Shown in pieces: positions 45,901-62,195 of a stretch of 64,000 nt of DNA. Origin of the DNA: Macrostomum lignano (taxonomy: Eukaryota); assembly GCA_002269645.1 (NCBI GenBank), contig NIVC01001499.1:62001-126000 (forward strand), read 5' to 3'. The notes under the pieces are model-generated. The model saw only the letters and a list, made by a program, of their open reading frames with translations, was not told the origin of the DNA and made no database searches. Each line of letters starts with the position of its first letter. Positions within the stretch are counted from its first letter, which is position 1. A program made the translations under genes and the position numbers.

Positions 45901-48900
45901 ATGAGATGTCAGATCAATCTATGAAGATGTCAGATCAATCTATAAAGATGTCAGATCAATCTATGAGATTTCAGATCAATCTATGAGATGTCAGGTCAAT
46001 CTATGAGATGTCAGAACAATCTATGAAGATATCAGAACAATTTACGAAAATGTCAAGATCAATCTATGAAGATGTCAGATCAATCTATGAAGATGTCAGA
46101 TCAATCTATGAAGATGTCAGGTCAATCTATTAAGATGTCAGATCATGTCAGATCTGTCTAAAACGTTTTGAAACTTGAAACAAAGAATCCAAGAAAGTCT
46201 GACACGCAATGCTAGAACAACTCCGTGATCTCTTTCCCACACAGAAACTGCCCAGAGTCTCCTACATCAAAGCCATAGACGTTTGGCTATTTGCCTGCCT
46301 GGCATTCGTGGTTGGCTCTCTACTGGAGTTCGCGCTGGTGAACATGCTTGCCAGACGGCAGGAGCAACGAAAACTTCGCGACGATCTTCGACAAATGATG
46401 GGCCGGGAAATGCGCATGCTGAAGGGCAACTTTCTGAGGCCAGCCGGTGCTAACAGTGGCAGAGAAGAGCAGTCGCAGCAGACCAACTCAAGGTAATTGT
46501 TTGACTTGTTTTAATTACTTCTGACGCATACAACAGGCTCCCAAGAGTTGAATCTAAGTTTCGCTTTTGTTCTCTAATCTCTAATGTGTCAGAGGCGCCA
46601 ATCTCTAATGTGTCAGGGGCGCCAATCTCTAATGTGTCAGGGGCGCCAATCTCTAATGTGTCAGGGGCGTCATATTATAATGTGTCATATCAGGAGCGCC
46701 AATCTATAGTGTGTTAGGGGCGCCACTCGTGTGTTAGGGGCGCCAATCTCTAATGTGTCAGGGGCGCCAATCTCTAATGTGTCAGGGGCGCCAATCTCTA
46801 ATGTGTCAGGGGCGCCAATCTCTAATGTGTCAGGGGCGCCAATCTCTAATGTGTCAGGGGCGCCATATTATAATGTGTCATATCAGGAGCGCCAATCTAT
46901 AGTGTGTCAGGGGCGCCACTCGTGTGTTAGGGGCGCCAATCTCTAATGTGTCAGGGGCGCCAATCTCTAATGTGTCAGGGGCGCCAATCTCTAATGTGTC
47001 AGGGGCGCCAATCTCTAATGTGTCAGGGGCGCCAATCTCTAATGTGTCAGTTGTGCCATTCTATAAGTCAGGTCTATAACCCGATTGAAAATCGGGGGCC
47101 CCATCGGCACTGACTGCCGACGGATCGGCACTGGTCTGTCGGCACTCAGAGTGTCCGGTAAAGTGGCTCATATCGGCACCGACGGTCGGTACTGTCGGTA
47201 CTGAACATCGGCACTCGCCGTCGGCACTGACCTAGAGCCTTCGCCGCACCCTCGCCCATTCGCCGTCGGCACTCATGTCGACACTCCCGTCGGCACTCAT
47301 GTCGGCACTCCCATCGGCACTCCCATCGGCACTCATGTCGGCACTCCCGTCGGCACTCCCGTCGGCACTCCCGTCGGCACTCCCGTCGGCACTCATGTCG
47401 GCACTCCCGTCGGCACTCACATCGGCACTCATCGACACTCCCGTCGGCACTCCCGTCGGCACTCAAATCGGCACTCATCGACACTCCCGTCGGCACTAAA
47501 TCGGCACTCATATCGGCACTCAAATCGGCACTCATCGATACTCCCATCGGCACTAAATCGGCACCCCTGTCGGCACGTAGGCCCGTAGGCCCGTATATCG
47601 GTACTCCCATCGGCACTCATGTCAACCCTCATATCGGTACTCACATTGGCACTCATTGGCCCTCGTGTCGGCTCCCATATATCGGAGGCATTTTGTGTCG
47701 TGAATCAATGGAATAGTTAATTACGTTATTAGTGTAATGGCAAAATTATATTAAAATAAAATTAGACCTGTGGACGTGAGACAGCAATTTAACTCCAGCA
47801 TCACTGAATCACCGTACACGTACCACGTACATGTATCCCCTATCGAGCATGCGTTCCATAAAGAAGTGGCAGGCAATGCAGGAAATATGGACAGAACAGT
47901 GTAATTGTCACATAGATGGTGGCCAAAAGTAGATACATGTATAAATATTACCCATTTATTTGGATGACTAGCCTTGTAAAGGCTCGACAGTTGACCGAGG
48001 CGAAAGCAGAAGGGAATTAAATGGTGCCAATCGACAACTGTTGCGTGGGGATGGTAGGCAACGAATTATTCACGTATAAAAATAAACAAATAATAAAACA
48101 GAAACTGAACCCTGCAGAGAGACTCGGATTTTGGGCACACGTACGCGTGCTATGTGTTCTGTTAAAAGGAAATGACACACAATTTAATAAAATGCTGCCC
48201 CTTCGCTTGCTACTACAACTACTACTTCTACTACTACAGCTAGCGTCTACCTACTTCTGGAAGTAACTGGACCTACGTTATACTTTGCTACTTATATTAC
48301 TAATCACTTATAGCGGGACCTCCAAATACCATCCGACTCCCATAAATGTCTGAGGTGGGGTGGGGTTTGAGGTGGATGCTCGCATCGGAAATGTAAGCGG
48401 GTCTTTGGTGGTCATTACGGTATAAGCAGGTGCAAACTAATGCTCAAAACTTAAAACTTAAAACTTAAACGTAAAAGCTTAAAACTAACTTCTTAGCTAT
48501 AATGCTATACGCATTTAGAGTAATGCTAGAAGAGTAAGGAAACTAAGGCTATATAATACTTTTTTCTTCAAGGGTCTATCAATGGCATCGTGGACGTTAC
48601 GTGGTCCCCCAACTGTGCTAGGAATTATACTTCAATACTTTAATTAAACATACAATCCCCGCGTCCTAGACCCCGACTTAGGCCCCTAGATCGCTGTCGC
48701 CCTTGTCGCCGTCGACATGGGCCGTGTCGCTGCTGGGGCCAGTGCCGCTGCCGTTGCCAGTGCCGCTGCTGGGGCCACTGCCGCTGCTGGGGCCAGTGCC
48801 GCTGCCGTTGCCAGTGCCGCTGCCCTTGCCAGTGCCGCTGCTGGGGCCAGTGCCGCTGCCGTTGCAAGTGCCGCTGCCCTTGCCAGTGCCGCTGCTGGGG

Positions 48901-62195: not shown

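Follow-up and report, generated by a model that had tools for sequence, protein, structure and literature searches.

A recently mobile, probable CMC transposon of Macrostomum lignano with predicted BEN-fold and F-box/LRR genes

We describe a mobile element in a 64,000-nt stretch of the genome of the flatworm Macrostomum lignano (assembly GCA_002269645.1, contig NIVC01001499.1, positions 62,001 to 126,000, forward strand), hereafter the window. Positions 47080-61594 of the window hold a real, recently mobile, multi-copy transposon. It is very likely a full-length copy of a young, multi-copy cut-and-paste family of the CMC group (CACTA/EnSpm-Mirage-Chapaev). It carries a transposase gene, a gene for a predicted F-box/leucine-rich repeat (LRR) protein, and a third gene whose product is predicted to contain a BEN fold. 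Animal CMC transposons whose termini read CCCG…GAAAA and which encode a predicted BEN-fold partner form a clade; this family is a member of it, and the F-box/LRR gene is what the family added. An earlier note, made from the letters of this DNA, had proposed a cargo-bearing CACTA/EnSpm transposon here, with the F-box/LRR and BEN-like genes as two full-length accessory genes.

Ends of the element

The features that define the element and its ends are:

47080-61594, genes on the minus strand: whole transposon copy, 14,515 bp (~14.5 kb)
47077-47079: left target-site duplication (TSD) TAA, directly outside the left terminal inverted repeat (TIR)
47080-47093, plus: left TIR CCCGATTGAAAATC, exact match, the element 3′ end in gene orientation; homology of the six other copies stops here
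47094-47660, plus: left subterminal array, motif RTCGRYACT (core GTCGGCACT), 35 copies, all inward, 12-bp period
61141-61580, minus: right subterminal array, at the element 5′ end, 23 motifs on the minus strand (inward) and 9 on the plus strand (outward)
61581-61594, minus: right TIR, exact CCCGATTGAAAATC match, the element 5′ end in gene orientation
61595-61597: right TSD TAA, directly outside the right TIR

The TIRs are perfect 14-bp inverted repeats between two TAA duplications, as the earlier note had read them. In a chance control for CCCGATTGAAAATC, none of 100 shuffles gave three matches at up to two mismatches. The termini read CCCGATTG…CAATCGGG (CCC…GGG), not CACTA…TAGTG or CAC…GTG. 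The inverted subterminal arrays of that note are also borne out. The exact 9-mer GTCGGCACT occurs 42 times in the 64-kb window, against 0.31 expected, and these copies are confined to 47138-47497 and 61142-61579, within ~500 bp of the ends, mostly pointing inward. Array periods were taken from Tandem Repeats Finder and the motif counts listed above from the degenerate motif pattern, which finds a single copy in the 13.4 kb between the arrays. In the right array the outward motifs form palindromes, and a 13-bp period lies inside a 53-bp higher-order unit. An internal 12/14 match to the TIR (CCCGATTGAAATTT, 51797-51810) was set aside as chance: it is within chance expectation and no motif array adjoins it.

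Copies and mobility

Copies were found in assembly GCA_002269645.1 through homologous proteins, followed by contig comparison. There are seven including the window, and the other six are 98-100% identical over long aligned blocks. In the second copy, L001, on the contig of PAA59085.1, similarity to the window begins and ends at both TIRs. A search with the F-box protein gave five more loci, and the full-length F-box protein gave a seventh. Every copy ends at the same TIRs wherever the contig permits a view. The insertion sites are:

Window / L005 (same locus): TSD TAA (TTA in gene orientation)
L002: TSD ATC; 12.7-kb deletion derivative
L011: TSD ATT; same 12.7-kb deletion derivative as L002; in the span of a Rhomboid-domain gene
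L004: TSD CAG; 5′ flank in common with L006
L001: no TSD, flanks CAG (9053) and TCA (22906); TIRs intact
L003: TSD unreadable, the 5′ end lying behind an N gap (3.5 kb)

The family thus shows four different perfect TSDs (TAA, ATC, ATT, CAG), all of the 3-bp length that characterizes EnSpm/CACTA insertions. BLAST of flank against flank found a common flank only for L004 and L006, so the copies occupy at least six distinct loci. L002 and L011 have two intergenic deletions that spare all three genes; since the same 12.7-kb derivative sits at two sites, the derivative itself has transposed. The check that the earlier note had suggested, a search for dispersed copies with the same TIRs, differing 3-bp TSDs and all three genes, was therefore fruitful: three further TSDs (ATC, ATT, CAG) were found and all copies carry the genes, with L006 running into its contig end before gene 3.

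Could a cluster of three host genes have been duplicated, in segments of the genome or in the assembly, with TIR and TSD matching by coincidence? The Mlig_3_7 assembly is redundant (PMC5730564), and the common flank of L004 and L006 is what such duplication would give. Homology nevertheless breaks off at the TIRs with single-base precision in all copies, flanks are unrelated at six or more loci, the four perfect TSDs are distinct, and the same end structure is found in related families, including one on a marine metagenome contig. Multiple copies, TIR-bounded homology and differing TSDs therefore exclude coincidence and segmental duplication, and we regard this explanation as extremely improbable.

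Gene content and transposase

All recognisable long open frames of the transposon are on the minus strand. As the earlier note had stated, they form three intron-containing genes on one strand (three exons in the transposase gene, four in the F-box/LRR gene, at least two in the BEN gene), with a coding GC fraction of 0.57-0.64. In order from the element 5′ end:

56826-60389, minus: transposase gene, exons 60389-59679, 59492-57652 and 57389-56826; 1038 amino acids (aa) if the run in the next line is C5
59180-59183, minus: C4 run (C5 in five other copies), which shifts the transposase frame
52682-54861, minus: F-box/LRR gene, exons 54861-54244, 54090-53946, 53793-53329 and 53160-52682; 568 aa
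48678-50938, minus: gene 3 (ORF2), exons 50938-49674 and 49428-48678; 671 aa

The transposase model follows the consensus of the copies and the protein P0002 (PAA59085.1, 946 aa). The latter is the best phmmer match to the 516-aa open reading frame (ORF) of the core (57622-59172, minus) and ~100% identical to it. The predicted protein has a basic N-terminus, an acidic Ser-rich tandem repeat, a CxxC…CxxC zinc-ribbon-like element, a catalytic core encoded in exon 2 and a conserved C-terminal region of ~190 aa. A 60-bp coding repeat in its N-terminal part (59727-60152) differs in unit number between copies.

A first word-index protein search with the transposase gave just one weak tick match. Phmmer with the core ORF found 3249 proteins at E <= 0.001, 939 of them at E <= 1e-10. 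Among 40 sampled homologues, 28 matched PF02992 Transposase_21 (best E = 5e-16), 12 DUF1258, three DUF4218 and two Plavaka. Mirage elements have 2-bp TSDs and Chapaev elements 4-bp TSDs; the 3-bp TSD thus fits EnSpm over either. In the 40-homologue alignment seven residues are invariant (D376, D466, C485, C488, H715, H720 and E740 in P0002 numbering). All seven fall in the window ORF 57622-59172, with the spacing C485-x2-C488 and H715-x4-H720. The pattern D…D…C(2)C…H(3-4)H…E is a hallmark of the EnSpm/Mirage/Chapaev/Transib group (PMC12730594). By transitive homology and these motifs, the protein appears to be a divergent CMC enzyme. The CCC…GGG termini agree with the CCC core proposed by DeMarco et al. 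for animal members (Schistosoma, Aedes, Tribolium), which begin CCC (PMC1636069). Of the CACTA/EnSpm label in the earlier note, the Transposase_21 lineage is retained, through homologues and motifs; the termini are without CACTA.

Taken by itself, the window could suggest a PIF/Harbinger element, with its TSD TAA, a TIR that starts CCC, and a transposase accompanied by a separate DNA-binding protein. This candidate was rejected on the TSDs of other copies and on the transposase family (Transposase_21, DUF1258, Plavaka). The TSDs ATC, ATT and CAG, and AAG in a sister family, are not TWA; DDE_Tnp_4 is not among the eight families matched by the 40 sampled homologues; and the partner protein has a predicted BEN fold and no Myb/SANT domain. 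We give it next to no weight.

A related transposase is found at the C-terminus of P0007 (UniRef A0A1I8IJ21), an M. lignano protein named ‘Guanylate cyclase domain-containing protein’. It is 42% identical, and P0007 is probably a gene-model fusion across an insertion.

A predicted BEN-fold partner shared with related families

The product of gene 3 has, in order, a basic N-terminus, a CxxC motif, a coiled coil, a predicted BEN-fold domain, a basic stretch and a (GTGNGS)n tail. The Gly/Ser/Thr tail (48720-49111) is an 18/54-bp coding repeat whose copy number varies between copies. Our model reproduces UniRef A0A1I8JMC4, named BEN domain-containing protein, over their common part. The public annotation over this range gives a 605-aa product, in view of which one further intron is possible.

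Comparison of gene 3 with PDB chains, by single sequence and by profile, gave only coiled-coil noise. The region of residues ~295-425 was therefore assessed by structure: a model by AlphaFold (AF2) from a two-sequence alignment has a mean predicted local distance difference test (pLDDT) of 85.2 and a predicted template-modelling score (pTM) of 0.76. Foldseek ranks 1-13 against the PDB are all BEN domains, those of Insensitive (Insv), Bsg25A/Elba, BANP, NACC1 and BEND6, with probability up to 1.00 and template-modelling (TM) scores of 0.42-0.64; ranks below 13 are noise. The C-terminal domain of gene 3 is accordingly modelled as a BEN fold, in line with the BEN-like protein of the earlier note.

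ORF2 follows the transposase gene collinearly in four related families. Identities to P0002 below run from alignment-wide to local values.

L007: M. lignano sister family; 38-45% identity; TIR CCCGCTGGAAAA; TSD AAG; 9.1 kb
L008: Tara Oceans marine metagenome contig; 32-41%; TIR of 33 nt, starting CCCGCTGAAAAAA; 9.9 kb
L009: Joint Genome Institute (JGI) metagenome contig; 31-40%; element ends outside the contig
L010: JGI metagenome contig; 34-41%; TIR CCCGTTGGAAAA (3′ end only)

No TSD is visible for L008, where the flanks are AAT and CCT; its metagenome contig possibly joins different copies. The termini of these relatives read CCCGCTG or CCCGTTG. L007 and L008 each possess a subterminal motif of their own, and both motifs contain CpG (TTTACGCC in L007, TCCGG-type in L008). 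The common ORF2 build is an N-terminal module, a CxxC motif, a coiled coil, a BEN-like domain and a low-complexity tail, the last also present in L009 and L010. The N-terminal module ‘YWVV…KGPFE.K..A’ is conserved in L008-L010 and weakly recognisable in gene 3 of the window (50938-50700). At least one of the four BEN-carrying related families comes from outside the M. lignano genome.

Presence in four related families makes gene 3 an ancestral core gene of the clade, and leaves no second cargo gene. The earlier note, which had counted it as accessory cargo, is to be revised on this point. By position and architecture, the BEN protein is the best candidate for a counterpart of maize TnpA that would read the subterminal arrays. 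Many BEN proteins bind short CpG-containing motifs, and both GTCGGCACT and the TTTACGCC motif of the sister family contain CpG. Gene 3 has no Pfam match to plant TnpA-type or plant transposon protein families, and literature searches found no paper linking BEN domains with EnSpm elements.

The F-box/LRR gene as cargo

The F-box gene has three introns. A GT-AG model for intron 2 was rejected: the GC-AG model gives a 568-aa translation identical to the annotated M. lignano protein PAA75384.1. The F-box is canonical (…VCRRW) and matches PF12937 (F-box-like) at E = 4e-13 and 49.3 bits, above the cutoff of 24.3, and PF00646 at E = 4e-10. A single-sequence structure model has ~10 strand-helix repeats over residues 120-385, at a low mean pLDDT of 66. 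By fold it comes closest to FBXL2-SKP1 and FBXL17-SKP1 (E = 1e-9 to 1e-8), then to SKP2, MAX2/D3 and TIR1, and phmmer against PDB sequences found FBXL2 and SKP2. Identity to the nearest solved relatives is ~14-18%. With an F-box and a modelled LRR solenoid, the product is predicted to be an FBXL-type F-box/LRR protein. The F-box/LRR gene of the earlier note is thus upheld by a strong Pfam F-box and an FBXL-like fold.

The gene has left no trace in L007-L010 by tblastn, and the gap between transposase and ORF2 is 0.2-1 kb in those families versus 5.9 kb here. Found only in this family, it is therefore true cargo, and of the two accessory genes proposed earlier it is the one that stands. Its three introns were kept, so it was acquired as DNA and not as a retrocopy. 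No TIRs or TSD were found around the F-box segment, which is flanked only by (TC)n tracts, one of them inside a nested transposable element (51059-51552, described below).

A search of 5.8 billion proteins with the F-box protein returned only the element’s own copies. Metagenome scans with the F-box protein and with the transposase alignment gave no matches. The literature searches found no paper on a DNA transposon that includes an F-box gene; Repbase was not covered. Some outcomes would have told against the proposal of the earlier note, such as an F-box or BEN gene at loci without these TIRs or family copies that lack the genes. None of these appeared in the searchable data, and the genome was not scanned for F-box or BEN genes outside the TIRs.

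Proposed mechanism

The DDE transposase would cut at the CCCGATTGAAAATC termini, and integration would proceed with a 3-bp staggered cut. The BEN protein may oligomerise through its coiled coil and bind the GTCGGCACT arrays at both ends, where binding might help to pair the ends or regulate the element promoter, as TnpA does in maize En/Spm. The F-box/LRR gene would have been acquired as DNA between the two ancestral genes and then passed on with all copies. As a substrate receptor, its product would most likely bind SKP1-CUL1. The target could be a host factor or the element’s own proteins; alternatively, the product may do the element no service.

Constraint and the weight of the evidence

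Variable sites were counted among copies after masking repeats and gap-adjacent columns. Variable columns numbered 2/5763 in coding and 14/3783 in non-coding sequence (Fisher p = 1e-4). In F-box exons, 0 of ~1700 columns vary, where ~3-6 would be expected at the element’s non-coding rate.

Several observations weigh against the account given so far. The contrast just stated rests on 16 sites, and 8 of the 14 non-coding sites cluster within 0.8 kb (47.8-48.6 kb). With only two coding substitutions, the copies are too alike for a ratio of non-synonymous to synonymous rates (dN/dS). The evidence for a function of the cargo is thin. That no close host F-box paralogue was found holds for protein searches; the genome itself was not scanned.

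For neither core gene does Pfam give a direct assignment. No transposase family was matched directly, with the ORF at E <= 0.1 or with full-length P0002 at E <= 1, which is why classification goes through homologues and the motif signature. Pfam BEN (PF10523) is unmatched by gene 3, and P0003 of the sister family reaches 14.6 bits against a cutoff of 23.2.

As written, the C4 run in the transposase gene leads to a stop at codon 384 of 1038; with C5 the frame is open throughout. The run is C4 in the window and L002, and C5 in L001, L003, L004, L006 and L011. C4 may be a homopolymer assembly error, which is at least as likely as a real mutation, because L011, the deletion sister of L002, reads C5 and the assembly is PacBio-based (PMC5730564), with other single-base indels scattered through it. 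All three genes are intact in L004, as are the transposase and F-box genes in L006 up to the contig end.

On mobility, neither an excision event nor an empty site (..TCTATAAGTTGTGCC.. at the window locus) was observed, and L001 is without a TSD. A chimera in the assembly, or recombination among copies, may account for the latter. The 3′ flank of L003 also begins CAG, like one flank of L001; in the comparison of the two, the 5′ flank of L003 is behind the 3.5-kb N gap.

What the cargo may do

The F-box/LRR gene may be a neutral passenger, a host gene that was captured accidentally and spread in a very recent burst; we give this somewhat less than an even chance. With at least 98% identity between copies, an ORF that is intact tells little about selection. 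Four related families transpose, or have transposed, without the gene. Plant CACTA elements are well known to capture genes at the DNA level, and the one F-box capture that the literature searches turned up, fragments in a Drosophila telomeric retrotransposon, offers a precedent (PMC13534243). The gene here, however, is no fragment: it is whole, keeps three introns and has start and stop codons of its own. The 5.8-billion-protein search gave no close host paralogue, and the ~15-18% identity to the nearest solved relatives argues against fresh capture of a conserved FBXL gene. Zero substitutions in the ~1.7 kb of F-box exons, and two deletions in the 12.7-kb derivative that both spare all three genes, also sit poorly with a gene of no consequence.

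The gene may instead encode an active counter-defence or self-regulation factor used by the element, which we consider rather unlikely. The SKP1-CUL1-F-box (SCF) ligase would then be recruited against a host restriction or silencing factor, or for turnover of the transposase or BEN protein. Viruses and Agrobacterium use F-box proteins in such ways (polerovirus P0, poxvirus PRANC proteins, VirF). The canonical F-box, the modelled FBXL-type solenoid of ~10 repeats, the presence of the gene in every copy including the deletion derivatives, and the depletion of substitutions in its exons all agree with this use. Conservation nevertheless does not extend beyond a single, very young family, neither a substrate nor an interaction or phenotype is on record, and literature searches found no described transposon using an F-box protein.

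Comparison with known systems

Maize En/Spm shares with this element the 3-bp TSD, short TIRs, inverted subterminal arrays of ~12-bp period, the Transposase_21 lineage and a two-protein system, TnpD transposase and TnpA there, transposase and gene 3 here. The M. lignano element differs in its CCCGATTG termini in place of CACTA, in a partner with a predicted BEN fold and a coiled coil and no Pfam link to TnpA, and in the extra F-box/LRR gene. In maize the proteins come from alternative splice forms of one transcript, whereas here the annotation gives separate genes. Of two classical CACTA features, the CACTA termini are absent, and no TnpA homologue was recognised by Pfam.

Among described animal elements, the closest relatives are the TRC elements, whose termini begin CCC. 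SmTRC1 of Schistosoma mansoni is ~4.7 kb long and has one ORF, TIRs of 54 bp and direct repeats of 2 bp (PMC1636069). Like the element described here, TRC elements (Schistosoma mansoni, Aedes, Tribolium) have animal hosts, one of them also a flatworm, Transposase_21-type transposases and CCC TIRs; unlike SmTRC1, ours is 14.5 kb long and has three genes, TIRs of 14 bp and TSDs of 3 bp.

Two other groups carry additional host-type sequence. In fungi, a TET/JBP dioxygenase gene is found in EnSpm, Plavaka and KDZ transposons and recurs across many families (PMC12730594). Some belong to the same CMC(T) clade, and the resemblance lies in stable carriage of one more host-type gene, complete and plausibly able to manipulate the host genome; the gene is for a DNA-modifying enzyme in fungi there and for a predicted ubiquitin-ligase adaptor in one animal family here. 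Plant Pack-CACTA/Pack-TYPE elements (PMC8903248) likewise have CACTA-type ends around sequence of host origin, but these are gene fragments in non-autonomous elements, whereas the present element is of autonomous type, with a transposase and a whole, spliced, annotated gene.

Among cellular proteins, FBXL2, FBXL17 and SKP2 have the build predicted for the F-box protein: an F-box at the N-terminus and, after it, an LRR solenoid that contains cysteines. Identity is low, as given above, the gene here sits in a transposon, and no orthology to a named FBXL is assignable. Insensitive, Elba/Bsg25A, BANP, NACC1 and BEND6 share the predicted fold of the gene 3 C-terminal domain; gene 3 differs in falling below the Pfam BEN threshold, in being transposon-encoded and in being paired with a transposase.

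Annotation, other features and host context

GenBank models of this assembly derive from a genome-guided transcriptome assembly from which repeat-overlapping transcripts were removed (PMC5730564). All three genes of the element are in that set, as separate genes, which implies that they are transcribed and that repeat annotation missed the family. The published repeat annotation probably left the family unmasked, and the three genes stand as ‘hypothetical proteins’.

Further features of the element are:

51059-51552: nested miniature inverted-repeat transposable element (MITE), 494 bp, 12-bp TIR CAGTGTTGGGCA, 8-bp TSD CTTACTGA on the minus strand
56306-56666: variable intergenic segment, 361 bp, its presence differing among copies
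60676-60865: 22-bp tandem repeat AGTCTCACAAAGTCCTACAAAG, 8 copies, between the 5′ array and the transposase ATG

The 494-bp MITE sits between the F-box gene and gene 3 and includes a (TC)n tract. It is a passenger within the element, looks hAT-like and appears older than the family’s spread. The 361-bp segment is present in the window, L004 and L006, partial in L002 and L011, and absent from L001 and L003; it includes one stray subterminal motif, and its edges show neither a TIR nor a TSD. The 22-bp repeat lies in the putative promoter or 5′ UTR and may be a regulatory array. Just 3′ of the F-box stop is a 94-bp direct repeat, 98% identical and 276 bp apart (52295-52388 and 52571-52664).

L005, in the public assembly, is the window’s own locus and 100% identical over 14,515 bp. 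The insertion lies within the span of an opposite-strand gene with Neur_chan_LBD and Neur_chan_memb domains, whose last exon, for the fourth transmembrane segment (TM4), ends near 62192. The flanks are host tandem repeat: a 24-bp unit repeated ~20 times on the left (46576-47050) and (CTGA)78 on the right (62188-62500). The earlier note had placed the insertion in a host repeat inside a Cys-loop channel intron, which agrees with these flanks and with the domains of that gene.

Elsewhere in the window are two other mobile-element regions and two host genes:

7712-12270, plus: host bicarbonate transporter exons (Band_3_cyto, HCO3_cotransp)
14689-18368, minus: Ty3/gypsy-type pol (RVT_1, RNase H, integrase)
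19550-21262, minus: piggyBac-type transposase ORF (DDE_Tnp_1_7, E = 3e-61)
23315-24316, plus: host gene with a fibrinogen C-terminal domain

Significance

The classification of this element is ordinary; its cargo, its conserved BEN partner and its tractable host make it worth follow-up. Animal transposons with whole extra genes of plausible host-manipulating role are rare, and every informative case of this kind has started a field of its own, as TET/JBP did in transposons of fungi and VANC in the VANDAL elements of plants. RNA interference can be used in M. lignano. Transgenesis is established there as well (PMC5730564). The family is itself tractable, being young and multi-copy with its genes in a transcript-based annotation, and the same genome holds a natural control, the sister family with both core genes and without the F-box gene. 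This opens a test of whether a transposon can use the host ubiquitin system, and another of the BEN domain as an end-recognition module of animal CACTA-type elements.

Both propositions may hold together, with the F-box gene recruited to exploit the host SCF and the BEN protein an ancestral end-binder of the animal CMC clade; we think this combination decidedly unlikely. If true, the F-box/LRR gene would be a transposon counterpart of the viral F-box proteins, and the BEN-carrying CMC clade would become a candidate source of cellular BEN-domain regulators.

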